Positions 20,560 through 58,097 of a DNA stretch of 64,000 bases are shown one piece after another; the stretch's first letter is position 1; each line of letters starts with the position of its first letter. The notes below the pieces were generated by a model, which had not been told where the DNA came from, searched no databases, and saw only the letters and a list, made by a program, of their open reading frames with translations. The stretch is taken from NCBI GenBank assembly GCA_016748015.1, contig JAAOMT010000127.1:1-64000 (forward strand). The letters are read 5' to 3'. The position numbers and the translations under genes are program-made. Origin of the DNA: Geosiphon pyriformis uo1. Its lineage: Eukaryota; Fungi; Glomeromycota.

Positions 20560-20965
20560 GGGGAAGGTATTATGCCAAAATGCATGCATAATACTGATGC
20601 AGGGTTTGATCTGAGATATCCAGGAAAAGATGCATCAAATTGGAACCACATTCATGCACCTGCATTGATCTAAAAGTAGCTTTAGAAATTCCAGCAACAA
20701 CAATGATTCAATTAGCCTTTAGGAGTAGTTTAGCGAAAAAAGAGATTAATATAAGAAGAGAAATAATTGATGCGGGATATGTAGGAAATATCATTGCTAT
20801 GCTACAAAACGACTCTGAAAAGGCCTATATCATAGGGCCAAATGAAAAGATAGCACAGGCAATATTTCTGCCTCTGGTAAAAATAGTGCAATTAGTATCA
20901 GTGAGAAATAGAGAGGAATTAAGGATAACAGTAAGAGAGATACAAGGATTTGGATCAACAGGTAG
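20560..20965 (+). pseudogene. dut: dUTPase domain of element B
   Basis: Motifs DAGFDL, RSSLAKK, IIDAGYVGNI, IAQAI and QGFGSTG; one frameshift near 20637. Confidence 0.9.
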
Positions 20966-21479
20966 AATAGATGTATCAGTTAATATGGTGGAGAAAAAAA
21001 TTGTTGGCCAAGAAGAAATTATCTCAACCAGTCAAGCTATTTCTATTCCATCATATAACCAGTACATGCTAGCAATAAAAAGGAAGAAAAAAGACCAAGT
21101 ACAAATTTTTGAAGCAGAAGCCAGTCTTTGTGAATTAGAAGAAGTTGGACTCATTAATCTCCACATACCAGCCAAAGATTACAGCCACATCAAAATTTCC
21201 ATCTACAACAACACAGGAAATATCATAGTAATACCAGCCAGAACCATTATTGGATACTTAAACACTGAAATAGAGGATCAATTACCAAGACCCATTCCAG
21301 ACTTTCTACAACTTTGTGAATATGTCAATATTACATCACAAACAATATACGGATGAAGTGAATGTTATTTGCTCCAACCAGAACAATTGGAACAAATGAA
21401 CATGGGAAACTTAGATCCACTCCAACATATGCAACTCAAGATATTGCTCAACCAGTTCAATGACATCTTTGCCAGTGAA

Positions 21480-33340: not shown

Positions 33341-34289
33341 TCAGAAAAAGCCCCAGTATTTGAATTCAAAGAGGAGAAAGAAATGCCACTTACTGAAACC
33401 TACATGGCTCTTGAATCAACATTCAATTGGACTGAAGAAACAGAACAGGAGATTTTTAAAGAATCAAGAGGATGGAAGAAAGTTAGATATTTTATACCAA
33501 AACCACAGAAACAACCACCCTATATTTCACTCAAATGCAAAGATTGCAACAAAAAACTTTCATCAATGGAAGCATGTATTTTTCCAGAAGAGGAATATGA
33601 AACTTGTACCTGTTACTTTTGCAAAGCATACCATAGAGAACAATTTAGATCTCCAAAAAGAAGTGGAAAATAGGACAACACATCTTGTCTTACATGTGGA
33701 GAAATGCTACCAGAAGAATGCAATTGGATTGATGTAGCAATAAGAGAAGGAGTATGTAATCAAACCTGTCAATATGCTCTATCAATTTCGGAAAAAGTCA
33801 AAAGAGGAACACCATTTGATGCAGCATACAACAGTGCTCTCAATAAACTTTACCACTACCCTCATGATGCTGAAATAATTTTTGACTTAGCAATGGCATT
33901 GATCAATGAAGCTACCAAGAAGATGTCCGCCAAATGAAAAAAGCTAAATACATTGAGTATACCATGGAATTAGCTAGATTTGATTATGAAAATAAAGTAG
34001 AAACCTACCACTAAATTGCAAGCCATATATATCCGACCAAAGAAACTCAAATTCAATGATTAGAGCAAATGAACATTCAATTGTGTGAAAAATGTGTTAT
34101 GCCTTGTGATGACCAATGGTGTTTAAAATGTTATGCTCTTAGCATTTCTCTGCCAGATGAGAATGATGAAAATGAAATCGAATTTGGAGTATCTGAACTA
34201 GTAGAAGAACTACCAACCACCCCCATCTATCTTCTTGAAAAGCAACCATCTCTACAACTTAAATATTTTGACAATTATGGCCAAGGAAT

Positions 34290-34690
34290 CAGACCAGAAA
34301 AAGCACACGAAATTGATGCTGGATATGACCTAAGATACTCAGGAAAAGATACTTTGGTTCTCCAACCAAAGTTCTTAACAAAAATTAATCTCAAAATTGC
34401 TCTTAAAATTCCATTAGGATCAATGGTTCAAATTGCCTCCAGATCATTATTGTCAAGCAAAGGAATCAATATTAGAGGAGGAGTTATAGATGCAGGATAT
34501 ACTGGAGACATTACCATCATGTTACAGAATGAGACAGACAAACCATTCAAAATTGAACATGCTAAAAAAATTGCTCAAGCGATTTACTTACTCTTAATTA
34601 ACATATTGGAATTACAATCAGTAAACAACAGAGAACAATTGGGAAAAAGTGAAAGAGAAACTCAAGATTTTGGTTCAACTGGACGATTTA
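34290..34690 (+). pseudogene. dut: dUTPase domain of element C (within ORF 34069-35271)
   Basis: DAGYDL, SRSLLSSKG, GGVIDAGYTGDI, IAQAI and ERETQDFGSTG. Confidence 0.93.
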
Positions 34691-35199
34691 CAGTTCCAGT
34701 AAACATAGCTCTTAATACACAAAATGAATCTTACCAGATTCTTCAACTTCCCCAGCCAATTACCATTTCACCTTTTGAAAAACATCATGAAATTTACACT
34801 TGCTCAAAATCCACCACTACACAACAAATCTTTGAATCCAATGAACAAATCTGTTTGAAGCATGAAATCTTAATTCCAAACGTTTATATCCCCAAAGGAA
34901 TGAAAAAATTTCAAATTACATTCTACAACCCCAATAATTACCCTATTGTCTTATTAAACAAATTAGAGATTGGAATCATACACAGCAATATTTTTCAAGA
35001 GGAAGACCCTCAAATTGTTTTTAATTTCATCGAAATTGTAAGGCACACTCTACTCCCAAATCCAAATATCATTCCCACTACTGAAAACTACCACTTTTTG
35101 GAAGAAAAACTCTCTCAAATCAACATGAGTTTCTTAAAACCTCAACAACAAAGACAATTGAAACAATTGATAGCTGAATTTGCAGATATATTTGCAAAA

Positions 35200-36531
35200 A
35201 ACAACAATGACTTGGGAAAAACAGACATTGTTCAACATCAGATCCATACAGAAGATGCTTCACCAAAATGACAACAAGCTTATCAAGTGCCACCTGTCAG
35301 CCACCAATTCATCAGAGAAGAGGTCCAAAGAATGCTCAATAATAGACTGATTCAACCATCAAGAAATCCTTGGGCCTCACCAGTAGTTTTAATTAAAAAG
35401 AAAAATAGAAAAATCAGATTCTGTGTTGATTATAGACAACTGAATAGTGTTACAATTGGAGATGTCTACCCTCTTCCAAGAATTGATGACATGCTAGATG
35501 CTCTAGGAAAAGCCAAGTTCTTTTCAACTTTAGACTTAGAAAGTGGATACTGGCAAGTCGAAATGAACCCAAAAGACCGACCCAAAACAGTATTTACCAT
35601 TCAGGGAAGAAACTATAAGTTCAATGTTATGCCTTTTGGACTCTGTAATGCACCAGCAACATTCCAGCAACTCATAGATGTTGTATATGAAGGACTCTTG
35701 TGGCAATCAGTAGTTGTCTATCTTGATAACACTGATGTATACTCACCAAGCTTTGAGACTCATCTCATTTACTTGTGAGAAGTTTTTCAATGATTATGGA
35801 AAGCAGGATTAAAGTTAAACATTGAAAAATGTCACTTTGGAAAAACAAGCTTGATTTTTCTTGGACACATAGTTAGTAAAGATAGAATCAAACCAAACCC
35901 CAGAACAATTAGTGCTGTCAAAAATTTTCAAACTCCCAGAAATACTACAGAACTAAGAGAATTTGTAGGATTAGCCTCTTACTATTGAAAATTCATAAAA
36001 GAATTCTCCGAAATTGCCAAACCACTCAATTATTTTACCAACAAAAACATACCATACAAATAGACTGAAGAACAACAAAAAGCTTTTGAAACTCTCAAAA
36101 CAAAATTGACAACAGCCCTAGTTCTTGCTTACCCAGACTTCAACAAACAATTCCAATTAGCTACTGATGCTTCACACATAGCATTTGGTGCCATTTTATC
36201 ACAATTAGATGAAAATGGCCAGGAACAAGTTATTGCCTATACCAGCAGAACACTCAAGTCAACAGAATTCAAATATGGCTCAACTGAATTGGAAGCTGCT
36301 GTAGTCATCTGGGCTTTCAAACACTTTCAACAATACCTGAAAAATAGAAAAGAATTTGACATAATAACTGACAATATTGGTCTCAAATGGCTTAATAAAA
36401 AGAAAACTAAACAAAGTGCCAAACAGTCTCAATGGAATGACTTCCTAGCAGACTACAGATACATTGTACATTACAAACCAGGAAAATTACACACCAATGT
36501 TGATAGCCTCTCAAGAATGAGACAATATTAA
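35200..36531 (+). pseudogene. pol: RT and RNase H of element C
   Basis: RFCVDYRQLN, YPLPRIDD, MPFGLCNAP, YLDN; TDAS, ELEAA; ends LSRMRQY*. Confidence 0.92.
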
Positions 36532-39759: not shown

Positions 39760-42700
39760 TTGTACTAAATAGTAAAAAAACTTCTTTCAAAAAAACTTTA
39801 GACTCTTTTTTGGGAATTTTGGATGAAAAAGAGGTTTTTTGAATTTTTGAATCTTCTAAATTACCTGTAATAATAATAACTAATTTGTTAACTAGTATAA
39901 TTTATCTTTTTAGAATAATTGAATCCTTTGTAATTAGTTTTAATAGATACAAATTATATTTATTTATTTTTGGTTTAAATAATAATATGAGAGTTTATAT
40001 AAATATATAATATTGTTTTGTTTAATCTGAATGACTAGTTATATATAATAAATATATAAATTATGTTTAATCTAAGTTATTTAGTTTAATTCTGTATACT
40101 AGATAGCAATTAAACTTTACTTATTAATTAATTATGATAAAAAAAATTTTTTTAGATTTAACAAAAAATAAAAAAATTACTTATGTTTAAACTAATATAT
40201 TAAATTATATAATTAATAAAATTTATTACAGTTTTATTATTGTTAATAAAAATATTATTGATTTTAAAAAATTTGTTTGTAATATTTAAAATAATTTATA
40301 TAATTGTATAATTATTTTTAATTTAAATTATGTTATTTATAAATATTTTAACTATAAAATAAAAAATTAATCTTATAATATTCTTAATTTTTTCAGTTTT
40401 AATTACAGATTTTAAGTTAATTTTATAATTATATAAATGTTTATACTTATTTATTTTATACAAAAAAAATCATAAAAAATTTTTATAATAGAAAAAAAAC
40501 TTTACTTTAATCTAAATTATTATATATTATATAATTTGTTATTAAACCAAATTTTGTTATAATTTTATTTATTTTATTATTATAAATATGTTTAAAAAAC
40601 CTAAATTTATTAATTCAGATTTTAATTATATTATTTTTGAAATAAAGCTAATTTATTAAATTTACAGTAAAAATAAACATATAAATAAAAATTTTTTTAA
40701 GTACAAAAAATTATTTTTTGCTGTTTTTATCAAAGTTATTAAATACATATTTATTAAAATACTTTTTTATTTATAAAACTTAAAAATTATTAAAATTTAA
40801 GTTTTTTTTATTTATTTAAAACTATTTTTATATATAAATAAAAATTTATAATATTTAACAAAAAGTTTATAACTATTTTATATATTTTATTTAAAATACC
40901 AAAAAAATTAATGATTTTGTTATTTAATATTTTTTTAATCATTTTTATTTATAATATTAAAAAAAATTTTATTATTAATATAATTATAAAAATTATATTG
41001 TAATTAATAAATATTAGAAATTATATTTAAAATTATATACTTCTTAGTTTATGTTTTTATTTATTTTGAATTTAATTAACTTAAATTCAAAAATAATGTT
41101 TTTATTAAATATTAAATAATTCAAAACAACTTTTTTAAAAAGCTTTTTTAATACACTTTTAATTTTTTATTTTTTATTTTTAACAAATTTTTTTATTTGT
41201 TTGTTAATAACCAAATAACTTTTTGTATTTTAGTTTTAAATAACTTAAAAAACTTATATAATTTTTTAATTTTAGCCAAAATTTAAAAGATTAATATAAT
41301 AAACTTTAATATTTAAAAACTTTTGAATTTACCAATTTTAAACTAATTTAATTTGATTTAAATTTATAATAAAATTTTTAATTTGATTTTATTATTTAAA
41401 CAATATGTTTTTAAAAATTTTAAATCCAATTTTTTTTATTTAAAAAGCTTAAATGTATTTTTTAACTAAAATAAATCAAAATTACAAAATTAAATTTTAT
41501 AAAATATATTGTTAGCTAATAAAATTATTATCTTTTTTAGAATTTTTTACATAGTATTAATATTAAAAAACTTTTTAATGATTTTAAAAACTTTATGATG
41601 CTTAATAAATTAACCAAAAATGTAATGGCAATTTTTTTTATTTGTTAGCATTTTTTAAACTTATATTGTATTTTTATTTGTCTTTATTAACTTGTTTATA
41701 AACTAAATTAAAATAAATATTTAGCAAACTTAATACCAAACCAAAATAATAACAAGTTTATTAAATATTATTTGCCAGTTATTAATTTATTAAAAAAAAC
41801 ACAAAAAATGCTTAAAAATAAGCTTATTTAGTTATTAATAAGTTTATAAACTTTATTAATGGTTTTTATCAAAAATAAAAATTATAAAATTTAATTTTGT
41901 ATAAATTATTAGCAACTCAATAATGTCATAAGTGAAAATACTTATTTTTATTTTGAATAGATAATATGTTATATATTTTTGGTAAATTTAAATATTTTTT
42001 AACTTTAGATTTGAAAAGTAAATATTAGCACTATTTTGTTGGTATTCAATATTAAATAATTGTTTTTTGTAATTACAAAAATCTTTAATATTTTATAACA
42101 GCTAAAACTTTTAATTAGTGCCAAGTTTGGTTCATTTTAACTTAAATTATAATTAAAAAAAAAGTAAACCTTTTTTTAATTAAATCAATATATGTAAAAT
42201 AAAATACTCAGCTTAAAGACAATTATTAAAATTATAGAAATACTTAACATTTATTTATATTAAATGTATTTTGTTAAACGATTGCAAAATACAAAAAAAT
42301 AATTGAAATAGCTAAAAAATAATTTTCAAGTAAATTAATACTTGCAACCATAGAAATTGATTTAAAAAAATACATTTTAAATCACGCTTTAAAATTGTAA
42401 ACCAAAAATTATATATTTGACATAATTATTTTATTATATTAATTTGCTACAATTTTACTTTATTCACTTCTCTTTGACTTTTCTAACTACTTTTTGTCAT
42501 CAGAAATTATACAAATAAGAATTGCAAAATTGGTTCACTTATATTATGTATTATGTATGTTAATTAATTTCTTTAACTCTCAAAAATATTTAATGTGATT
42601 ATTATAAAAATAAGAAAATTTGGTTTAAACTACTTAATATATTATAGAAGTAAAAACATCCTTATCACTAATAATATTTTTAAAGAAATAATTTTATTAC

Positions 42701-43416
42701 CTAAACTATATTACCTAAAAATAACGCATAAAGATGCTATCCGGCTTAGTTTTAACTCGAATCATGATCAAACTTTTAAAATTAAATCTAACACAAGGAA
42801 GAATTAAAAAAAAGTATATAATAGTTACTTAAGAAATATATGTATTTAAGCAGCAAAAATTAGTATTCAAACTCATTATAAATTTGAAAGCTTGCAACAT
42901 ATTAGTAAATCAAGATATCTTATAGTTGGTTTTTTTAATGTAATTATTTTATTTATCTATTTATTTTCTAAATCGTATTTACTCCTTAGGGATTTTAACC
43001 TTGCAAAGCTATCTATCAAATATTAATTATAGCTTATAAGGAGGATAATTAAGATTATCAAGGTTTTGTACTAAATATGATATAATCCATTTTAACGCCT
43101 TCCCATCGTTAAGAACCTTATCATATTAAGGTCTTAAAATAAATTCGAAGGTGGTATTTCGAAATAATGAAATAATGAAATTTAAAATTTCTTTTAGATC
43201 TGCTCGCGATATAGATAAAGCTCATCGTTCTAGTGATGATAGGTAACAGAAAAAAGGTTATATAAGAAAGTAATTTAGTATTTATTGACTTTCAATGAAA
43301 GTTTAGATTAAAATTTATTTCCAATTGGTTTTTATTAAAAAAACTTCAAATTATTGTTTTAATCTAAAAGAGCATAGTAATAAAACATCTAAATTTCTTT
43401 TTATCTATGCGAGCCT

Positions 43417-43845
43417 TTAGCAAAGCCCACCATAACCCCGGAATGAGGATAGTCCTCCCATATAGCCAGTGCCGTAGCCGAGATTACCATATCCAACACC
43501 ACGGCCGAGATAACCATCAATTGGAGCATACAGATTACTTTGAAGAGGGGCTCCAATAATTCCATCATATCCAATTGGTGAAACGGCAAGCGGGCTTACA
43601 ATATTTTTGATCGGGGTAATGGGATTGAGCACACCTAAACCAACTGGAGCTATGGTTCCAATCTTCGCAGCTGCCGTGGCAGGCAAAGCAGTAGCAATCG
43701 GGGCTTTATTGATAATTCCATCAGAGGGTTCCCTTTTATAAAAGCTCAAATGCGAGTTTGAATTATTAATAATTGGAGCTGATTGGATTTGGATAGCGAG
43801 AAGAATTGTAAAGAAACTAGCAAAAAATTTTTTAAAGGAGGGCAT
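43417..43845 (-). CDS. Small secreted protein, 142 aa: signal peptide, KR site, Pro/Ile/Ala-rich middle, Gly/Tyr-rich tail (copy 1)
   Basis: Intact ATG-TAA ORF with aaaATG context; GC-richer than its flanks; hydrophobic N-terminus with IQS|AP cleavage; FYKR|EP. Confidence 0.85.
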   Translation of the reverse strand: MPSFKKFFASFFTILLAIQIQSAPIINNSNSHLSFYKREPSDGIINKAPIATALPATAAAKIGTIAPVGLGVLNPITPIKNIVSPLAVSPIGYDGIIGAPLQSNLYAPIDGYLGRGVGYGNLGYGTGYMGGLSSFRGYGGLC

Positions 43846-44334
43846 TTTAAAATAAAATATTTTAATTTTAAATGATATTTTTTTTAAAGAGATTATTCTT
43901 TTACAAAGAAAAAAAATGCTTTTTTAATATTAAATACTAGGAATAAGAAGAATCTTATTTATAATACCTTTTTTAGTGCTTTATGAAATTTCCGACTTGA
44001 AAAATCGTCTTTCACGCATAAATTTAGATCAAATCTTTAAAAGAGATAGCATAAAGTAATAAAATTGCTTCAACTTTTATGGCATAATTCAAGTTTGATT
44101 TTTCTAGCATAATATCATATTTTCTTAAAAAGATTAAAAACTATTTAGCATAATATAAAAACCTAATTTAATCAGAAAGCACATAGGCAGGGAAAGAAAT
44201 GGTAAAATGATTGCATTATCTAAAATTCATATTTATGAATTGCTAAACTCTTCCCCTAAAAAAAGTATCCACTCATTAAAAAATAAAAAACTCCCAATTT
44301 AAAAGCAATTTGACAAAATTTGATAATTATCAAA
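43846..44334. promoter_or_regulatory. Putative bidirectional promoter (489 bp)
   Basis: Short head-to-head gap between the two ATGs; inferred from gene orientation only. Confidence 0.5.
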
Positions 44335-45294
44335 ATGATTAACAGTAGAGCTAAGCTTGTCAAACTTTTGGTCACTCTTATTGCTCTTTCGTCTTCTATC
44401 TTCCAAAGCTTTTATGCATCTGCAGCTCCTATTGAAACGCGTAGTTTTCTGACAGGGTATAAGCCAGTTATTCTTCTCAATACCGCCCAAGAAACCATTG
44501 CATGTAATGAAGCCGCCAATACTAATCAACTCGAGATCGAAGCAGCCAATGCAGCTCAGACAGCGAATACATATGACAATGAAGCTGCAACAACTTTCTT
44601 ATTCAATAAACGGAATTTACTGCCAGGGTATAAACCAGTTATACTTTTCAATACCGCCCAAGAAACCATTGCATGTAATGAAGCCGCCAATACTAATCAA
44701 CTCGAGATCGAAGCAGCCAATGCAGCTCAAACAGCGAATACATATGATAATGAAGCTGCAACAACTTTGCTTTTTAATAAGCGCAGTTTTCTAACAGGAT
44801 ATAAGCCAGTCGTTCTTCTCAATACTGCCCATGAGACTATTGCATCCAATGAGGCCGCCAACGTAAACCAACTCGAGATTGAAGCAGCCAATGCAGCTCA
44901 AACCGCAAATACTTATGATAATGAGGCTGCTGCTACTTTACTTGTCAACAAACGGAATTTCTTGGGTCAATATAAACCCGTCATTCTACTTAATAGTGCA
45001 CAAGAAACTATCGCTTCCAATGAAGCCGCCAACGTAAACCAACTCGAGATTGAAGCAGCCAATGCAGCTCAAACCGCCTGTAGCTATGATAATGAAGCTG
45101 CGACAACCTTTTTATTTAATAAACGCAATTTTCTAACAGGATATAAGCCAGTCGTTCTTCTCAATACTGCTCATGAAACTATTGCATGCAATGAAGCTGC
45201 CAACACAAATCAACTTGAAATTGAGGCGGCTAATGCAGCTCAAACGGCAAATACATATGATAATGAAGCCGCCGCTACCCTTCTCGTAAATTAA
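44335..45294 (+). CDS. Kex2-processed repeat protein (KEP) precursor, 319 aa: signal peptide plus five 55-aa peptides separated by KR (copy 1)
   Basis: ATG at 44335 (the ORF track starts at an upstream TTG); signal ...ASA|APIETR; 171-bp repeats start at 44443, 44614, 44785, 44956 and 45127, joined by NKR. Confidence 0.92.
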   Translation: MINSRAKLVKLLVTLIALSSSIFQSFYASAAPIETRSFLTGYKPVILLNTAQETIACNEAANTNQLEIEAANAAQTANTYDNEAATTFLFNKRNLLPGYKPVILFNTAQETIACNEAANTNQLEIEAANAAQTANTYDNEAATTLLFNKRSFLTGYKPVVLLNTAHETIASNEAANVNQLEIEAANAAQTANTYDNEAAATLLVNKRNFLGQYKPVILLNSAQETIASNEAANVNQLEIEAANAAQTACSYDNEAATTFLFNKRNFLTGYKPVVLLNTAHETIACNEAANTNQLEIEAANAAQTANTYDNEAAATLLVN

Positions 45295-46772
45295 AAGCAA
45301 ATTTTTTAAAATTAATGCTAATCACACACACGTTATATTTTTCCTGTAATTTTACAAGATTAAATAATTATGTAATCGAGTTTTATTCGGTTAAATTTAT
45401 CTTGAAAAAAATTTCAGTCCGCTTAAATAAAACTTGGTTATTTTAATTTGAGGTTATCTTAAATTGAACTAGGTCTTATCTTGCAAACCTTTCTTTTTCT
45501 AACGAGTCTTGAATAATAGCTCTTTTGAACTATTAAGCAATGACGAATCAAAGTCCAAAAATAGCTATTATGAAAATTTTATAAAATACTTTAACGCAAG
45601 TTCGCCATGAAAATTGAAAATGTAATAGGATAAATTATATGCTAAAAATATCGCGGTTTTATCATTTCAGGTTTATAAAAAAACAGTTTTTTTGGAAATA
45701 TTAATTCTGTATAATCATTAATATTGTATTAAACATTGATTGCCAGAAATTGTTATTAAGGTGAATAAGTGTGATATTTTGTAACAACTAAAGTTCATTA
45801 AGACTAGTTGAAAGTTGATTTGGTTTTTTATTTTTAAATGTAATTTATAGATAGTAGTTAGATTCTTAAAGAATATAATACATTAAAATAAATGTTTAAT
45901 TAATTTAAATTAATAAATTTATAATTTAATACTTATTCTTAAAGTCTATGAGATTTTATTAAACTCTTAAAAAAATAATAATAAGAATTCTAATGAATAT
46001 TATCTGGACAAATTAAAGTAATATAATTTAATATAATTATTTTTGTATCTTTAAAGCTTTTTAATAAAATATAAATAAACTACATTATTAAAATAACCAA
46101 CTATTATTATTGCTTGTTTTGATGTAGTTTTTAATTTATTGAATTTTTAAATATATCTTCTATAACAAAATTATTTCATAAATAAAACAAAAAACAAGCT
46201 TTAAATATTGCAATTATAATGGGTATTATTTAAAATAGTAATTAGAATATAAATTTTAAAAAATATTTATAATATAATAAGTATTTTACAGCAGTATATG
46301 TTGGTATATTATTAAAAACAATTGCTAATAATTTAGTTTTTAACATCTAATATATTTTTAATTATAACTTTAATCATTTATTTTCATTTTGAACTTATAT
46401 TAATTACTTCTCAAATTTAAAATTTATTTGCTAATAAAATAATAAAAAGCCAAAAATAGGTTGGTTTAAAATATTTTTCTATTTATCAAATATCAAAATA
46501 ATTTTAATGCTGTTTTTTTTATGTAATATAATTAAATTGGCTTTTTTAGCATTTAAAATACTATTTAATAAAGCAGTTAATTAAAAAAAATTAAAATTAG
46601 ATTTAAAAATTTAAAAAATTTTGAATTATTAAATTTGTTATTTTTTTTTTAATTGCTTAATGAGTGAGGTCCAAACACTACCTAGTACTATACATCAAAG
46701 AATTGATCTAAACTAGGCATGAATCATGTACTTTCTACACATGACCAGCCACTCGGGCCAATCAGAACAACA

Positions 46773-49700
46773 CTATGCAGCTATATGAACTGATACTGAT
46801 TCACCTATACCTGAAAAAAACAAACAAGACTTGTGAAAACCAAAATAAACACCTAGAGCATTAGTGATGCCAAGTAACCTAACCACCTCTGCAGAAAACC
46901 TCTAAGCCAAACCATGAACTGAGATGATGGCCGAACCATCTAGCAGGATCAGTCCATTCTTCTCCATATATGCACGATGCTTAACACAAACCAACTAGAC
47001 ATCCTCCCTGAAAGCAAGACCAAGAGAGTGCACAAACTTGACAATCTTCAAAACAGCAATCTTGGGGTTGTGAAAGATGGAAACAGTCTCGCAAAACCAC
47101 TTATTGAAAACAAAGCCCTTAAAAAAAGCCATGGACACAGAGGAATCAGAAATACTGAATGATAACAGCTGCAATATACCTGAGGAAGAATAAGAGAAAC
47201 CAGAAAGTGCCTTCCAGGACCCTACATGAGAATCCAACAACTGACTTCGAACAGACTCGTCAACCTTGTAAGAGAACACATGATCCGACACCTCTACCTT
47301 ATCACAATACAAACACAACACGCTAAGATAATGTCTATTATAGAGGCGCTTTCGAACAGCAACTGGCAGCCGATGGTGTAAAGACTTCATAAAGTAAGTA
47401 CGCATACTGGACAAAGACCTGTTGGTGAAACCTGCAGCCATATGCAAATTAGAATGCCATACCAACAATGAGTGAGGCCAATCAACCTCAGAAGACAAGC
47501 TGCTCACCAAAACCCCAGAACCAGAACCAACCTCTCATTGTGCATGACAAATAGAATGATAAATATCATGAACAAAATGTCTCGAATTTCCAGAAACAAT
47601 ACTACCATCAGCTGACAAGAAGTGCTTACTCAAGTGAGAAGGAAGATACCAATTGGAGAGAGAAGTAGCACCAGCAATCGCGTCAGCACGCTTGTTTCTC
47701 AAAACACCAGAATGATCTTTTACCTTGTGAAAGCTAACCCTCAACTTCTTACTGCAAATCACGTTAACAATATGACGACGTTTGACCCAATACTGATTAC
47801 GATAATCGGAATACACCAGACCCAACTCCGACCTGCAAGCATCCAAAGCCGATTGACTATCTGAGAACAAACAAACAGAGCTTGATGAGAAAACACACTC
47901 CAGAGCCAAGGCAACAGCCTGCAATTCCGCCAAAGTAGACGACATCAAACCCAACACACTAACGCCCAAATCTAAACCAATGTCCTCAAAAAAAACAGCA
48001 GTGCCAGCTCTACAGCCAACCGTGCCATGATTACTAAGGGACCCATCTGTATATACTAACAGGCTGCTAGCACTGGTTGCCAAGAGATAATCACAAACAG
48101 ACACAATTCATCAGACTCAAGAATGTTTGAAAGACCACCATCACCCAAAACTAAAGACTGAACATGAAAAGATCTCACACTATTGAGAAACAAAACAGAA
48201 TGCTTGAACCACTCAGGAACTGGGCCATGGGGGTCCAATCTCTTCCACCACTTGAAAGTGTACCAATCATAGACAGCACCATGACGGTCATGAAGTTGAT
48301 CCACAAAGGCAATACTATACCACCGAAGGGAAGGGAGAAACCTAAGAAACCTTGACTCGCCCAAAAGCTCAGACATAGGCACTCCACCATAAGACCGAAA
48401 GGAACTAACTAAAGAGCCACCCAGAAACACATTGCAATCGAGAAGAACACAAATCATGCCTGCCAGAAAGTTATTAGATGCACTGACATAAATACGAACA
48501 GGAGAACTCAATGGATGAACAGGACGCCAACACAAAACTTGCAAGTCATGAGACCTGTAGGAAAACAAATAACCCAAGATACCACCAGAGTTTGCAAAAC
48601 TGACAAGGGAAGCAATCTTGCTTTCAGATTGAACTTGAAAAAATGACTTTAAACCATAAAATGAAGGGTGATAAATCACATCATTAGGGAAATCGAGTGG
48701 CAAACCAGACTTGAGCTTCAAACCTTTATGAATCAGAGCATCCCACTTGTTGTACACACCAACAGGAATAAAACTGAACTGAGTTCTGTAGCTGACTATT
48801 GGATGCAGAACTGCCAACACCAAATACAAGAACTGCTTATCTGAGACCACCTTCCTCAACACCAGATTGGTAAAAAAGCGAATGTCCGAATGTGCCTTAA
48901 CCAAGCTAGGCTTTGAAAGACCCTCAGTTGATAGAAAAATGCCCAGATATCAGTAAGATTCCCCCTTTTAGGCAATAGAAATGGGTGAACCACTAATAGA
49001 AAGAAAGGGATTGCTAACTCTGCTATTGATAGGAATGGCTACCATTTTGTTATTATTAATAGAGATGTCATTAACACGAAAAAATTCACTAGCAACATTA
49101 AGAATATGCTGAGTAGCCATCTGACTGCTGCCAACCCAAATCGTATCATCAACAAAAGCACCAGTGGCAAAAAAAAAAGAAAATCCAGCCTGAGGTTTGG
49201 AACAACTATTCTTGGAAACAAAGTGAGAAATCAACCTATACCCACATATACTCTCCTGTCTTTTGACTTCGCACAAAAAAGGATCATAAAATATGTGCCA
49301 GAGAAGAGGAGAGAAGACCTCTCCCTGGTCCAAACCATTATGCACACAATAACCACTTGTTAATCCAAAATCAGTCATGACTTGATTGGTACGATTCCTA
49401 TGAATACCGCCAAAAAACCGAATAAATTTGCTACACATCTTAATCCTGACCAAACTCTTCTTGAGATGCTCCCAGCCAACTGAGTCATATGCCTTTCGCA
49501 TGTCCTGTAAAACCAGCCAGAGTTCCCTGTTTTTTTCCAAAGCATTTTTGACCACTGAACCAATTGCAAAAATAGGAAACTGGGTCGTTGTACCTTTCAG
49601 AACTGAAAAATTGGCCCCCCGAAGCACATTAAAAGTACTACATGCCAAAGAAATCCTGTTAGAGAGGATCTTGGAAAGAATCTTGTGAGCCATTTCAATT

Positions 49701-51446
49701 AAGGCAATAAGACATGTATTTATCAAAACATTTTTCCACTCATAAAATTTGGGAATCATTAAGACCTATGCTTCCTTCCAAGGACCGGGCACTGATTCAC
49801 TAGACAAACAAGAGTTCAAGAGCACCAACAACATATCTAAAACCGACCTATCACAATGTTTCCAAAGCTCATTTGAAATACCCAACAAACCAGCCGCTTT
49901 ACCATCCGGAAGATCAGAAACCACCCCAAGGAACTCATCATACTCAATCGAACACATGACTTTAGAAAAAGCTTTATCAAAAACATACTCCAGCAGCTAA
50001 TATTGGAGGTGCCAATCATCCGAGACATTATCAATCACCCGACACTTCCTAGTCCAACCTTCTATGATCGCATCCACCTTGGACTTGACCTGCTTAGGTT
50101 CTAAAATCAAATCATCATCAACTACCAAATGATCCAGCACAATCTTACGAAACAGGCACTCTAACACACTCTTTATTGTATGATCTTTATCTACTTCAAA
50201 GCTTTCCATCCTCTTGTCAATCACAGACCTGATGTTTGCATCTTTAGTACTCTGAGATTTAACAAGCTTGGACACCCGATAAGATTTCTTGGCACCAAAA
50301 AGAGCAGAATGAACATGATTAGATTCCACACCAGATCCTAAACAACCGAAGCCTTGACACTGTTTAGAGAAGCCCAACACTTCATAAGAAAAGCAAAATC
50401 CACAGCACACCTCACACGAAACGCCTTAATAATCTTTGAAACCAGAAGTTCTAACTTGTGAAATCTTGAAGACTCTTTGGTAAAAATATCATTAAATTCC
50501 TTAAACCACTTTTTCTTGAACACTTCACTAGCCAAAAGAACTATTATCTTGTGAACAACATCCCATATTGCATCCAAATCTGAAAAACCCACAAAAATAG
50601 TGAACTCATTTGAGAATATTGTTGCATTAGCCAACGTGGCATACTTAAAATTGATCCATTTACCCTTATCAGCACCCTTGAAATCGAACTTCCATCTGTT
50701 CCTGTTTGCTTGTTTGCGAAAAGAGTTCAATTGCATATCCAGAAGTTCACCTAGACCCAAAGACACCAAAACAGCTTGATGATCTGTGTCAGAATGCTCA
50801 CTGACACCTGAAACATTACGACGTATCATCACATTGACCAGATTTGGAGAGACAAACATGTAATCAATTGTTCTCTTGACACTCCTAGAATTCTCCCAAG
50901 TGGGCATTTTTACAGCCAGGCTCCTGACCAAAGAGTTAATCAATCCCAAATCAAGGCACTTCTTGAAACTCGCACACTTACAAGAGCCATCTTCATTAAA
51001 ATCACTGCTGAGAATAACAAAGGAAGACTCATTAACAGCCTTTGCAATGATAGAGTTGATTTTGTCTGTCTGAGAGAACCAGACTGCTGAAGAAGCACCA
51101 GCATAAATTCCCAAAATTGACACAGAGAGCTTATTCTTAAAAAGTAATTTGATAGACATGAGCTGACCCAGCACCTCAAACACCTTACACACATGTTTCG
51201 CCAAAGAAGAGTTCATAACTACCACCACACCAGCACCCAGATACCCAGAATCCAAGCCAGTAGTAAACACCCAAACTCCATTAAACTTGTTAATGATCTA
51301 GGGTCGAACCCTATCCTTTAACTTAGTTTCAGTAAAAATAGAAATTGAATTGTCTATGTCCTTATGCCAACAAACAACATCACTCTGCTTCGCAGGGTTG
51401 TTCATTCCTCTAACATTGCATGTAGCAACTTTCTATACTAATTCAC
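46773..51446 (-). pseudogene. L2 ORF2 (APE-RT-RNase H-Cys/His finger)
   Basis: SDFNE, IDYM, TDH; QDMRKAYDSV, QGEVFSPLLW, AFVDD; VYTDGS, AELQAVALAL, FSDSQ, VKDHSG...AD; CLYCDKVEVSDH. Confidence 0.9.
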
Positions 51447-53344
51447 TCATTGGGAGGGAGATTGGAAGTTCGCACTACCAGTCAAAACCAGACTATCAAA
51501 ACAAGCGGACAAGCTTAACACAGATTTGGAAAGGCCCTTTAACATATTTTCTAATCTAACAACATAAGGGGATGTAGACGAGTCCACAAACATGGCAGAC
51601 TCATGGCCATTGGCCATACTCAAATCTATTTCCACTGTCACATTACTTTCTGAATTCTGCAGTGGGATAATCACTGGCAGCCAGCATTTGTGACCAGGCT
51701 GGGGAACCACCAGCATGAGCAACTCTAATTTCTTAGTTAACTTATCAATTTGTCCTGCAAGACTGACAAGACCATCTTCAATACTAACCAATTTCTTTTC
51801 TAAATTTTTTGCAACAGGAGGGGTAGGTTTACCATCGATGATGGAACCAAAATGTGCCTTACTACCAGAGAGAGAGGGAATAGAGAAAGCACCAACCACT
51901 AATGCCCAAGTTTTACTGTCAAAAGCCAAAAGACGAGAGATAGATGCAGATTTCTTTGCATAAATTTTTGCCAATCTGGATTGGTCCTGAGCCAAAAGGG
52001 GAGCCTTTCTGCCTTCTGCAATCCCAGCATTTTTGACTGATCTACAACTGAGTGCAGTATGACCAAAATTCTTACAAACCGCACATAAAGCCAAAGAAAG
52101 ACAAGACCAATGGAGACCAAGTCTTTTATAACTGGGGTTGTTGCCATTGCATTAACTAATTCCACTTCTGAGCTAAAACACACAGTGGCACAGCGGATGT
52201 GAGAATAACTGACGGGATTGTGATTGATAAAGCAGGTTTTTCCACCAATAGAACCAATAAAATCCCACAAATCATGAGCAGTAGTTCCCATGGGGAGAAT
52301 ATATAGCAAAGTCCTAAAATTATTCCTGGCATCCCATAATTGTTTGTCGATGTCAGCCCTGGCTACCCGAACCATATCCTTCTCAATAAGGATAGACCAC
52401 TTAGAGGCTAAAAAATCAGTCTGGTCTTAATCTTCCAATTCGATGATCGCTTTTTGCCATAAACTCACCAGCTGCATTTTGATCGACTTAATGATGCCAA
52501 ATTCGGCCACAGTCGTACGCACAGTCTCCAAAGATGTTCCCACAGGAATTTTCTTTAGCACAATTGCCCGATTTGTACAATTGTTGACAGGGCACTTGAG
52601 ATTAGTGTTTACCATAACACTATGATCATTAGCCAGATTTGCCACAGTTATCATCACCTCTTCAGAAGTAAACGTGGCCTGAATGATTCCACCAAATTTT
52701 GAGGGGGTAAAAGCTCCCCCAAAACCATTCACACTAGAGAAAAGTTTTCTGACAAAATGTAGTTTTTTCTGAGATGATTTTCCAGAAACAGCCACAAGAT
52801 CAATATTCAAAGCAAAGGATTTACAAACAGAAATTTGAATAGAAGGTTTAAGCAGAAGAGGTGGTAGAAGAAGAATAGAATTATCCAAAACATCATCATC
52901 ATCATTGCTTTTTCTGCCAAAATCAATAGTACTTAGAGGCTTTCCAAGAACACGCTTGGTAACAATTCTCTTGGGACCTTTGGGTGTTGCTTCAATGTCA
53001 TTACCTCCAGACTCTCTTTTACTCTCAAGCTGAAAGCTTGTTTCTTCGATCAGATATTTTTCCCCTATATCGACACTTTCCAACTTAGTAATATTTCCAC
53101 TCTCATGCCTAACCAAATTGCTAGAGGCGGCACCTGCAGAGACACCAACTATCTTGACAGGTTCTTTCAGCAACCCACCTTTGCATTTCTTCCTGGAAGA
53201 GGAGTTGACTACAGCTGTACCAGAAAGTGATTTTTTTTTGGACCCCTTTATAACAGAAATGCCACCGCCGACAGCAGCTTTGTATTCAAACAAAAACGGT
53301 TTTGAAGTATCTAACTGAATAGCGACAAAAAATACGAGAAACAA
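51447..53344 (-). pseudogene. L2 ORF1
   Basis: Fragments 52427-53344, 51899-52375 and 51447-52094 (CAVCKNFGHTALSC knuckle); homologous to L1 ORF1. Confidence 0.82.
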
Positions 53345-55208
53345 AAAACTTTTTTCAAAATATGTACTTTTTCAGAACTTTGGGAAGTAGGAGAGAAAGA
53401 AGTTTTGTTTTTTTTTCTAACAAAAATGTTGACAGTTATTTTGATTTAATTAAACTACTTAAGCTCATTAAAGTCTTTTGTTATCTATTAAAATGTTTAT
53501 TTATTTAATATTATTATTCAAAACAATAATTACTTTTTTTTATAATATTTTTAACAATAAAATTAATTATTAAATTTAATAGTTTTTTAAATAATATAAG
53601 TAAAATAAAAAAACATTAAAAATTATGTTGCTTATATAAGTATTATTATTTATCAAAAATAATAATTGTATATATATATAATACAATTTTTAAAAATTAT
53701 TAATTAATTAATATGTTAATATTTTGCGATTTTTTTAAGCTTAAAAACATTTGCTTTATTATTTGTCTTGTTATAATAAATGTTTACAACTTCTTAAGAT
53801 TTTAGTTTAGTATAAAAATATGTATATTTTTTTAAATAATTTTAAATAATGTTTTTAATGAATAAGTTTTTTAAAGTTTTTTTTATAATTAAAAGCTTTA
53901 TTACAAACTTTATATATAGGATAATTATTGTATTTATTTGTAGCTTTTACATTAATATAATATTATTTGTAAATTTATGTTTTTTAGAACTATTAATGTG
54001 TTGTCAAGCTATTTTATATATATATACAATTATATATTTATTATTTTATATGTAAAAATTCTTTTACCAAGTTATTAAAAACATTAAACATTATTGAATC
54101 TTTTAATAAACAAAAATTTTAAATAAAAAGATTTAGGATAATTTTTTATTAGAAGTTGTTTTATTATATAATTCTAGTTTAGTTAAGTTCAATTTTAGTA
54201 ATACTTACTGGATATTTCAATGAACATTATTAATATATATGCTCTAAAGTAAACATAATTATGTATTTTTTACATATAACTAGCTATTCAAATTCAAATA
54301 CAAATATAAATATCTTTTAAATATTAATTTTGTTTTTTAATTTTCAATGTTATTTATAAAAATAATTAGTTTTATTCAAATGCTTTTTCTTGTAGTTGTA
54401 TGCTATAAACTTTTTAAAATTTATTGTTTGTTAAAAAAATTTTTTATAATTAGTTCAAGATTTTCAATTTTCAGGTTTTTATTTTAGATTATTTAAAAGT
54501 CGAGAGTTCAAAATATGAATAATATCTTTTTTAGAATCGGGAATCTCTATTATTTTATATTATACTTTAAATAATAATAACAATAAGTTAAAACTTAAAG
54601 AAATTTATGACTAAAAGAAATAATAGTTTCAAGATAAAATTTCTATTAACGTCAATATTCTTCTAATTTCTTTAACTATTTTATTAACTTAAAAAAAATC
54701 ACTTAGTTTATTGCTTTTAAAATATTTTATGCAAAATTCAAAATTCTGCAAATAGAAGTTATGCATTTATTTAATACAATATTAATGATTATACAGAATT
54801 AATATTTCCAAAAAAACTGTTTTTTTATAAACCTGAAATGATAAAACCGCGATATTTTTAGCATATAATTTATCCTATTACATTTTCAATTTTCATGGCG
54901 AACTTGCGTTAAAGTATTTTATAAAATTTTCATAATAGCTATTTTTGGACTTTGATTCGTCATTGCTTAATAGTTCAAAAGAGCTATTATTCAAGACTCG
55001 TTAGAAAAAGAAAGGTTTGCAAGATAAGACCTAGTTCAATTTAAGATAACCTCAAATTAAAATAACCAAGTTTTATTTAAGCGGACTGAAATTTTTTTCA
55101 AGATAAATTTAACCGAATAAAACTCGATTACATAATTATTTAATCTTGTAAAATTACAGGAAAAATATAACGTGTGTGTGATTAGCATTAATTTTAAAAA
55201 ATTTGCTT

Positions 55209-56168
55209 TTAATTTACGAGAAGGGTAGCGGCGGCTTCATTATCATATGTATTTGCCGTTTGAGCTGCATTAGCCGCCTCAATTTCAAGTTGATTTGTGT
55301 TGGCAGCTTCATTGCATGCAATAGTTTCATGAGCAGTATTGAGAAGAACGACTGGCTTATATCCTGTTAGAAAATTGCGTTTATTAAATAAAAAGGTTGT
55401 CGCAGCTTCATTATCATAGCTACAGGCGGTTTGAGCTGCATTGGCTGCTTCAATCTCGAGTTGGTTTACGTTGGCGGCTTCATTGGAAGCGATAGTTTCT
55501 TGTGCACTATTAAGTAGAATGACGGGTTTATATTGACCCAAGAAATTCCGTTTGTTGACAAGTAAAGTAGCAGCAGCCTCATTATCATAAGTATTTGCGG
55601 TTTGAGCTGCATTGGCTGCTTCAATCTCGAGTTGGTTTACGTTGGCGGCCTCATTGGATGCAATAGTCTCATGGGCAGTATTGAGAAGAACGACTGGCTT
55701 ATATCCTGTTAGAAAACTGCGCTTATTAAAAAGCAAAGTTGTTGCAGCTTCATTATCATATGTATTCGCTGTTTGAGCTGCATTGGCTGCTTCGATCTCG
55801 AGTTGATTAGTATTGGCGGCTTCATTACATGCAATGGTTTCTTGGGCGGTATTGAAAAGTATAACTGGTTTATACCCTGGCAGTAAATTCCGTTTATTGA
55901 ATAAGAAAGTTGTTGCAGCTTCATTGTCATATGTATTCGCTGTCTGAGCTGCATTGGCTGCTTCGATCTCGAGTTGATTAGTATTGGCGGCTTCATTACA
56001 TGCAATGGTTTCTTGGGCGGTATTGAGAAGAATAACTGGCTTATACCCTGTCAGAAAACTACGCGTTTCAATAGGAGCTGCAGATGCATAAAAGCTTTGG
56101 AAGATAGAAGACGAAAGAGCAATAAGAGTGACCAAAAGTTTGACAAGCTTAGCTCTACTGTTAATCAT
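55209..56168 (-). CDS. KEP precursor, 319 aa (copy 2)
   Basis: Translation identical to 44335-45294. Confidence 0.92.
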   Translation of the reverse strand: MINSRAKLVKLLVTLIALSSSIFQSFYASAAPIETRSFLTGYKPVILLNTAQETIACNEAANTNQLEIEAANAAQTANTYDNEAATTFLFNKRNLLPGYKPVILFNTAQETIACNEAANTNQLEIEAANAAQTANTYDNEAATTLLFNKRSFLTGYKPVVLLNTAHETIASNEAANVNQLEIEAANAAQTANTYDNEAAATLLVNKRNFLGQYKPVILLNSAQETIASNEAANVNQLEIEAANAAQTACSYDNEAATTFLFNKRNFLTGYKPVVLLNTAHETIACNEAANTNQLEIEAANAAQTANTYDNEAAATLLVN

Positions 56169-56657
56169 TTTGATAATTATCAAATTTTGTCAAATTGCTT
56201 TTAAATTGGGAGTTTTTTATTTTTTAATGAGTGGATACTTTTTTTAGGGGAAGAGTTTAGCAATTCATAAATATGAATTTTAGATAATGCAATCATTTTA
56301 CCATTTCTTTCCCTGCCTATGTGCTTTCTGATTAAATTAGGTTTTTATATTATGCTAAATAGTTTTTAATCTTTTTAAGAAAATATGATATTATGCTAGA
56401 AAAATCAAACTTGAATTATGCCATAAAAGTTGAAGCAATTTTATTACTTTATGCTATCTCTTTTAAAGATTTGATCTAAATTTATGCGTGAAAGACGATT
56501 TTTCAAGTCGGAAATTTCATAAAGCACTAAAAAAGGTATTATAAATAAGATTCTTCTTATTCCTAGTATTTAATATTAAAAAAGCATTTTTTTTCTTTGT
56601 AAAAGAATAATCTCTTTAAAAAAAATATCATTTAAAATTAAAATATTTTATTTTAAA

Positions 56658-57086
56658 ATGCCCTCCTTTAAAAAATTTTTTGCTAGTTTCTTTACAATTC
56701 TTCTCGCTATCCAAATCCAATCAGCTCCAATTATTAATAATTCAAACTCGCATTTGAGCTTTTATAAAAGGGAACCCTCTGATGGAATTATCAATAAAGC
56801 CCCGATTGCTACTGCTTTGCCTGCCACGGCAGCTGCGAAGATTGGAACCATAGCTCCAGTTGGTTTAGGTGTGCTCAATCCCATTACCCCGATCAAAAAT
56901 ATTGTAAGCCCGCTTGCCGTTTCACCAATTGGATATGATGGAATTATTGGAGCCCCTCTTCAAAGTAATCTGTATGCTCCAATTGATGGTTATCTCGGCC
57001 GTGGTGTTGGATATGGTAATCTCGGCTACGGCACTGGCTATATGGGAGGACTATCCTCATTCCGGGGTTATGGTGGGCTTTGCTAA
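56658..57086 (+). CDS. Small secreted Gly/Tyr-rich protein, 142 aa (copy 2)
   Basis: Translation identical to 43417-43845. Confidence 0.85.
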   Translation: MPSFKKFFASFFTILLAIQIQSAPIINNSNSHLSFYKREPSDGIINKAPIATALPATAAAKIGTIAPVGLGVLNPITPIKNIVSPLAVSPIGYDGIIGAPLQSNLYAPIDGYLGRGVGYGNLGYGTGYMGGLSSFRGYGGLC

Positions 57087-58097
57087 AGGCTCGCATAGAT
57101 AAAAAGAAATTTAGATGTTTTATTACTATGCTCTTTTAGATTAAAACAATAATTTGAAGTTTTTTTAATAAAAACCAATTGGAAATAAATTTTAATCTAA
57201 ACTTTCATTGAAAGTCAATAAATACTAAATTACTTTCTTATATAACCTTTTTTCTGTTACCTATCATCACTAGAACGATGAGCTTTATCTATATCGCGAG
57301 CAGATCTAAAAGAAATTTTAAATTTCATTATTTCATTATTTCGAAATACCACCTTCGAATTTATTTTAAGACCTTAATATGATAAGGTTCTTAACGATGG
57401 GAAGGCGTTAAAATGGATTATATCATATTTAGTACAAAACCTTGATAATCTTAATTATCCTCCTTATAAGCTATAATTAATATTTGATAGATAGCTTTGC
57501 AAGGTTAAAATCCCTAAGGAGTAAATACGATTTAGAAAATAAATAGATAAATAAAATAATTACATTAAAAAAACCAACTATAAGATATCTTGATTTACTA
57601 ATATGTTGCAAGCTTTCAAATTTATAATGAGTTTGAATACTAATTTTTGCTGCTTAAATACATATATTTCTTAAGTAACTATTATATACTTTTTTTTAAT
57701 TCTTCCTTGTGTTAGATTTAATTTTAAAAGTTTGATCTTAAAAAAATATAAATTAATCCAAATATAAATTTTTTATTTTTTAAATTAATAAAGCAATTAT
57801 ATAGACAATATTTTAAAAGCAGATTAAACATATTAATATATTTTTGGTATTTATTAATGATTTAAGACTTTTAAAAAGCTTTATTTTGTTTTTTTAATAG
57901 TATAATATAATACACAAATATTAAATTACTTATAATATAACTAAATTATAACAAAAGAATCTTAACAATATTTTTAAATTGACAAAGACTTACTGTTTTT
58001 AAAATATTATCAAGCTTAATTTTATAAAATTTTTAAATAATTTATAGATTATGTAATTACAATTAAGATAATTTAAAAATAATAACACAATATAAAC

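Follow-up and report, generated by a model that had tools for sequence, protein, structure and literature searches.

A Glomeromycotina family of 55-residue peptide units in KEP-type precursors and its head-to-head neighbor gene in Geosiphon pyriformis

[quoted passage not shown] In Geosiphon pyriformis, a glomeromycete that hosts a cyanobacterium, its representative, gene A, lies head to head with a second secreted-type gene, gene B. We favor, with moderate confidence, the reading that gene A would supply unglycosylated, beta-rich peptides for a wall or surface polymer that works like Rep1 of Ustilago maydis, with gene B as a lineage-specific neighbor.

The locus and its inverted duplication

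The window analyzed, a stretch of 64,000 nucleotides, contains two intronless, divergently transcribed genes 489 bp apart, and the coordinates confirmed both open reading frames and the gap that the initial annotation had described. Gene A (44335-45294, plus strand; ATG at 44335, stop codon ending at 45294) encodes a KEP-type precursor of 319 aa, and gene B (43845-43417, minus strand; ATG at 43845, stop codon ending at 43417) a protein of 142 aa. The ATG-to-ATG spacer between them (43846-44334) is AT-rich and represents a putative shared promoter region. Both genes are contained in arm 1 (42766-45733, plus strand) of an inverted duplication whose arm 2 (54770-57737, minus strand) is identical to it, with 0 mismatches across 2,968 bp. 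Arm 2 carries a second copy of gene A (56168-55209, minus strand) and of gene B (56658-57086, plus strand), in agreement with the earlier claim that the pair was duplicated as a unit. Since no difference was found over approximately 3 kb of mostly AT-rich DNA, the second copy would derive either from a very recent inverted duplication or from an assembler placing a single consensus twice. Just outside the breakpoints no older homology was detected between the flanks, and therefore nothing points to gene conversion of an older copy. In both copies, the duplication end at 42766 / 57737 falls precisely on a GATC word, which may be due to chance or be a library or assembly signature. AT deserts flank the arms at 40000-42766 (GC 8-19%) and 53000-54770 (GC 18-23%).

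A fragmented LINE-type retroelement with endonuclease, RT, and RNase H pieces lies between the arms (46640-52943, minus strand), and the window outside genes A and B consists of gypsy-type and LINE-type retroelement debris. The remaining long ORFs were retroelement-derived, with matches to gag, RT, integrase, dUTPase, RNase H, endonuclease, and protease. Among 35 further ORFs, 30 were similar to retroelement copies elsewhere in the window or at other loci, and the other five sit among retroelement ORFs. This agrees with the earlier statement that genes A and B are the only intact host-like genes. A dUTPase domain was observed in gypsy-type elements at 20640-21356 and 34069-35271. A Pfam scan of 20 window ORFs other than A and B gave no match to DUF3328, tyrosinase, or methyltransferase, which bears out the initial annotation on the local absence of these enzymes.

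The gene A precursor and its unit family

KEPs combine a signal peptide with near-identical motifs split by KR, yield many copies per transcript, and are frequent in Glomeromycotina (PMC6339444, PMC7329392). Gene A has a leader, repeated near-identical motifs, and KR between the motifs, and its assignment as a KEP, with predicted KEX2 cleavage, could be retained. A signal and pro region (aa 1-36; 44335-44442) that ends in a single Arg is followed, all on the plus strand, by five 55-aa units with a period of 171 bp: unit 1 (44443-44607), with six Asp/Glu and one Lys, unit 2 (44614-44778), unit 3 (44785-44949), unit 4 (44956-45120), and unit 5 (45127-45291), which runs to the stop codon. KR pairs separate the units at residues 92, 149, 206, and 263, and the single Arg before unit 1 brings the canonical sites to four out of five. 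The leaders of genes A and B were judged by Kyte-Doolittle hydropathy rather than by a signal-peptide predictor. In gene A the best 11-residue mean, starting at residue 8, was approximately 2.5-2.6, in the same range as that of gene B, and homologs of gene A have similar leaders. The claim of a leader and KR processing in both genes thus stood for the hydrophobic leaders and for the KR sites, apart from the single Arg at the first site of gene A, with cleavage as a prediction. A proprotein-convertase P-domain is present in the Geosiphon genome.

Unit 3 has 22% Ala, 15% Asn, 11% Leu, 11% Thr, 9% Glu, and 2% Gly. The units have a net charge of about -5, conserved Glu/Asp columns, a Tyr in each unit, and 0-1 Cys per unit. 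While gene A resembles KEPs in its leader, repeats, and KR pairs, its 55-aa unit had neither a Pfam family nor a sequence match in PDB. Pfam matches on the whole of gene A (EF-Tu D3, CATSPERG_NTD) had zero passing stretches and disappeared when single units were queried; they were discarded as artefacts of repeat summing. The unit motifs were not found in the supplementary text of the 2020 KEP survey, a text that may omit some sequences.

A search of 1.84 billion proteins with the unit profile retrieved 19 matches, and the named fungal ones were all glomeromycetes. They belonged to Archaeosporales (Ambispora and Geosiphon), Diversisporales (Dentiscutata, Gigaspora, Racocetra, Acaulospora, and Diversispora), and Glomerales (Funneliformis). 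Other searches added homologs from Entrophospora and Glomus cerebriforme, and the unit occurs in four Glomeromycotina orders; Rhizophagus was not among the unit matches identified by name. ESM Atlas feature searches with gene A retrieved nothing. The homologs keep the 55-aa length and the C-terminal K(R), and the family is old within Glomeromycotina. Glomerales precursors have a single unit, and other peptides delimited by KR come after it. In two of them (L025:10001-10489 and L026:9412-9900) a conserved C-terminal Gly/hydrophobic peptide of approximately 46-55 aa forms a separate unannotated family. In Diversispora epigaea, the annotated 55-aa spliced model (L039:10001-10267) seems to be a mis-annotation of the frameshifted remains of a precursor with several units.

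Within Geosiphon, the annotated paralogs of the A and B proteins are G9A89_023661, G9A89_023662, and G9A89_023667. Two intact gene A paralogs on contig C789 (G9A89_023661/2; L012:5158-6478, C789 ~334900-336240) form a tail-to-tail inverted duplicate with 98.6% identity over 1.3 kb. Together with the duplicate in the window, this suggests that the gene A family underwent inverted duplication at least twice in this genome. A further copy, G9A89_008472 (L015:4887-5110, contig C614), has a single unit and a damaged leader and is probably a pseudogene.

Purifying selection on the gene A unit is strong. Nine out of ten unit pairs had dN/dS values of 0.04-0.12 at dS 0.76-2.5, the young pair 1-2 had 0.24, dN between units was 0.04-0.16, and the comparison of gene A with its paralog G9A89_023661 gave a dN/dS of 0.10. 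The fungal units are also depleted in N-glycosylation sequons. Across 26 non-redundant units, N-x-S/T was seen twice against 34.4 +/- 4.9 expected, while the control motif S/T-x-N was seen 29 times against 34.8 expected and other spacings were also at expectation. A column-aware test gave 2 against 17.8 expected. The significance of these tests is overstated because the units are homologous, but the controls are specific. This avoidance indicates that the peptide would pass through the ER and that selection would act against bulky glycans on it.

These data also bear on two other proposals for gene A. The first is that its peptides are soluble, acting on the plant or Nostoc partner as signals or apoplastic effectors, or binding cations as polyanions. 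On the one hand, both pheromones and host-induced peptides are found among KEPs (PMC6339444), the negative charge and the conserved acidic columns are compatible with such roles, and strong conservation could reflect a receptor. On the other hand, the length of 55 aa greatly exceeds the 9-24 aa of the pheromone class (PMC6339444), both the conservation and the avoidance of sequons span the whole unit, and the unit is alike even though the hosts differ (a cyanobacterium versus plants). We consider soluble peptides an unlikely account. The second proposal is a dikaritin-type RiPP precursor with its enzymes encoded elsewhere, for which the KEP architecture and the Tyr in each unit could be invoked. 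Conservation along the whole unit, as opposed to around a short core, speaks against it, as does a genome search for DUF3328, which gave 0 matches with an uninformative control. The absence of DUF3328 from the scanned ORFs, along with a survey of 1,461 strains that found none outside Ascomycota and Basidiomycota (PMC7329392), makes this proposal extremely improbable, and the initial annotation was right to call a dikaritin cluster unsupported.

Copies of the unit were also detected in two bacterial sequences. A soil-type contig with actinobacterial features (JGI 3300037258) contains a gene for a secreted-type protein of 137 aa (L022:909-1322; gene GC 69%, GC3 0.90) that adjoins a VOC-family gene. 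The C-terminal 48 residues of this protein share 69% identity with the Geosiphon unit, above that with any other fungus. The other copy is a weaker, partial unit at the start of an RTX / serralysin-C-terminal-type gene (L027:6001-6564), apparently split from an upstream RTX piece on a bacterial contig, with 39% identity to Acaulospora over 51 aa and a profile E-value of 6e-4. A sequon is present in both bacterial copies. No further bacterial copies came up in four scans of contigs from GTDB and JGI or in a plasmid search. A transfer of the unit between fungus and bacterium is possible, each copy being known from a single record.

Gene B and the head-to-head arrangement

Gene B has a hydrophobic leader of about aa 1-22 (best hydropathy from residue 8), a propeptide whose end is a single KR at aa 37-38 (43732-43737, minus strand), a predicted Kex2 site, an Ala/Pro/Ile-rich middle (aa 39-90), and a tail (aa 91-142) with 31% Gly, 13% Tyr, and a terminal Cys, the only one in the protein. 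With no repeats and one KR, it falls outside the KEP class. Secreted repeat proteins with KR motifs, proposed to be surface or amyloid-like, are known as GpRIC1-3 in Geosiphon and as AGL/IDP in AMF (PMC8786786); compared with AGL proteins, gene B is Gly-rich (19%) but with 10% Pro and 11% Ala. No homolog of gene B was found outside Geosiphon, and its own paralog was the only match among proteins of comparable length. An ESM Atlas feature search with the paralog on C789 retrieved one weak arthropod hypothetical protein (0.78, below the chance threshold). Comparison with the broken C789 copy gave a dN/dS of 0.41-0.49 (p 0.02-0.04), which suggests that gene B is a real gene under modest constraint. 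It is a secreted-type, Gly/Tyr-rich, Geosiphon-specific protein and probably also a wall protein.

A third gene A paralog on C789 is placed head to head with a gene B paralog across a 321-bp spacer, of which both gene-proximal blocks could be aligned. This pair has diverged from that of the window by a dS of about 0.17 in gene B and 0.28 in the gene A leader, and the A-B linkage therefore predates one segmental duplication (C736/C789). Both members are broken: the A copy (L013:6495-7276) by the same one-base insertion at the ends of two consecutive units, and the B copy by a premature stop at codon 121. In their first 92 codons, the intact gene A paralogs of C789 are both 93% identical to the broken A. 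Upstream of them, the A-proximal spacer is matched only weakly and gene B has left no trace; A was therefore copied without B and remained intact. Outside Geosiphon, neither a gene B homolog nor a divergent secreted-type ORF was found near gene A homologs (0/10 loci in both cases, eight other genera), although one of these loci extended only 730 bp upstream, and a B that is spliced and has diverged beyond recognition could have escaped detection. The genes upstream of these homologs were unrelated (Gpr1/Fun34, IF-2B, Na/Ca exchanger, and a BTB-like ORF).

The initial annotation had proposed that the two genes form a head-to-head module, and had named a lack of conserved linkage, together with uncorrelated expression, as a ground for rejecting it. 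The first of the two was observed, as linkage was not conserved across taxa: gene B is confined to Geosiphon, the ten loci in eight genera lack it, the intact C789 paralogs do without it, and the other pair is broken. In such a module, the two genes would form an obligate pair, co-regulated from one bidirectional promoter, and their products would build a two-component coat that consists of a peptide scaffold and a Tyr-cross-linked matrix. The short divergent spacer, the persistence of the linkage in the diverged C789 pair, and the secreted-type nature and joint duplication of both genes in the window all agree with it, and the decay of both C789 partners would fit coupling weakly. Against it, in addition to the distribution of gene B and the intact A paralogs, the spacer identity is about that expected from the neutral divergence of one segmental duplication, and a genome search for tyrosinase gave 0 matches (a search without a working positive control). 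Moreover, the Gly-rich tail peptide of the Glomerales precursors is not detectably related to gene B; it resembled B by eye and had been considered as a fused gene B (Rosetta-stone), an idea that was rejected (hhalign probability 0.2%; shuffle fractions 0.16-0.91, HMM 0.85). We do not think an obligate pair likely. The head-to-head pair is a Geosiphon-specific arrangement and not a conserved two-gene system. Gene B joined A as a divergent neighbor before the segmental duplication, and the two may be co-regulated from a putative shared promoter in Geosiphon, but A can do without a nearby B.

Predicted fold and candidate role of the peptides

AlphaFold modeling used a 46-row alignment of two units with the C789 paralog as query, in which the two units stay joined, unlike the mature peptides. 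Each unit was predicted as a long beta-hairpin with strands at about residues 9-25 and 37-55 and an 11-residue loop, and the two linked units packed as a four-stranded sheet. The two-unit model had a pLDDT of 80-84 in its best strand blocks (mean 68, pTM 0.49), and two out of five models were above pLDDT 60. Covariation by mutual information gave no clear hairpin register. A shallow full-length model (8 rows) was helical with pLDDT 32 and was set aside as uninformative. The gene A unit is most likely a beta-hairpin, a prediction in which we have moderate confidence. Three ESM Atlas clusters (139-181 aa, 65-116 members) matched the two-hairpin model with TM 0.76-0.78.

The packing of linked units raises the question of whether the precursor stays whole, or is cut at some sites, and functions as a single beta-sheet protein with many hairpins, as the monobasic first site would also allow. 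This seems very unlikely in view of the family alignment, where the terminal position is K without exception among the units extending that far. In addition, the linkers between units vary widely, with extra KR pairs frequent in Acaulospora and Dentiscutata, and the Glomerales precursors have one unit each.

The nearest structural matches of the model were the pore stems of CDCL, MAC/perforin, and gasdermin/RCD-1 (best Foldseek E-value 0.027; VIA Z 8.6, rmsd 5.9). Such matches would suggest antimicrobial or anti-grazer pore peptides whose hairpins oligomerise as membrane-piercing beta-barrels. The likeness to MACPF/CDC and gasdermin stems is one of geometry only, namely two long adjacent beta-hairpins. 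Identity was 3-12%, the two-hairpin model had no Foldseek match at E <= 0.001, and the Z value was near the tool's background for unmatched models. Neither a head domain, a sequence match, a significant fold match, nor a lipid-facing hydrophobic face was found that would place gene A in these families. The hairpin faces have a mean hydropathy of -0.1 to 0.5, with conserved acidic residues along the strands. The net charge and the lack of a hydrophobic face make membrane insertion unlikely, and pore formation is in our view highly improbable.

Rep1 of Ustilago maydis, which gives rise to KEX2-released peptides of 34-53 aa that form a wall amyloid (PMC3133707), is the functional analog that we propose for gene A. 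Both would release peptides of similar size and both would contribute to a beta-rich wall polymer. Rep1 is amphipathic, whereas the gene A unit is acidic and weakly amphipathic, which makes water-repellency doubtful; amyloid is proven for Rep1, whereas the gene A polymer is putative. No Rep1 homolog was among the 19 matches of the profile search (a comparison by profile), and gene A would at best work like Rep1 without being homologous to it. GpRIC1-3 share with gene A the organism and subphylum, the KR motifs, and secreted repeats, but they are Gly/Asn-rich, while the gene A unit has about 2% Gly, lacks Gly- and Asn-rich repeats, and is predicted to be ordered. Hydrophobin features were also missing: there is no eight-Cys pattern in either gene, given the few Cys residues noted above, and no Pfam match. 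A search of the Geosiphon genome for hydrophobins, without a working positive control, gave 0 matches; a single candidate is reported from Rhizophagus irregularis (10.1101/2022.08.19.504535). By its sequence, gene A is neither a hydrophobin nor a Gly/Asn-rich GpRIC.

In the reading that we favor, the gene A precursor would enter the ER via its leader and a Kex2-type convertase would cut after the KR pairs, freeing five near-identical, acidic 55-aa peptides per transcript. These peptides would carry no N-glycans, would fold as a long two-stranded beta-hairpin or beta-arch, and would join at their edges, many copies together, to form a beta-sheet polymer at the wall or at the hyphal or spore surface. 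We infer such tight packing of peptide copies from their conservation, the avoidance of sequons, and the predicted hairpin. Of the earlier proposal of self-assembling surface peptides, the part that concerns gene A is thus still the best reading, on account of purifying selection, predicted hairpin, and sequon avoidance, while the part that made it a conserved two-gene module did not hold. A far-reaching extension, which we regard as rather unlikely, is that the hairpins, with the geometry of a MACPF/gasdermin stem but no head domain, build giant single-layer beta-sheets, rings, or tubes that serve as a scaffold of the wall or the spore surface across arbuscular-mycorrhizal-type fungi, take over part of the role of hydrophobins, were passed at least once to a soil actinobacterium, and in Geosiphon co-assemble with the gene B protein expressed from the shared promoter.

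Given that gene B is lineage-specific and its linkage to A is not conserved, a two-gene framing adds little. If more genomes bear it out, the near-identical unit of the actinobacterial-type gene would be an unusual exchange of a secreted structural module between a fungus and a bacterium. A 2025 review points out that no study has yet looked at wall components of AM fungi of the kind of hydrophobin rodlets, and asks for wall proteomics (PMC12165283). The gene A unit family, which is conserved, short, synthesisable, and found in four orders of Glomeromycotina, provides a specific candidate structural surface protein.
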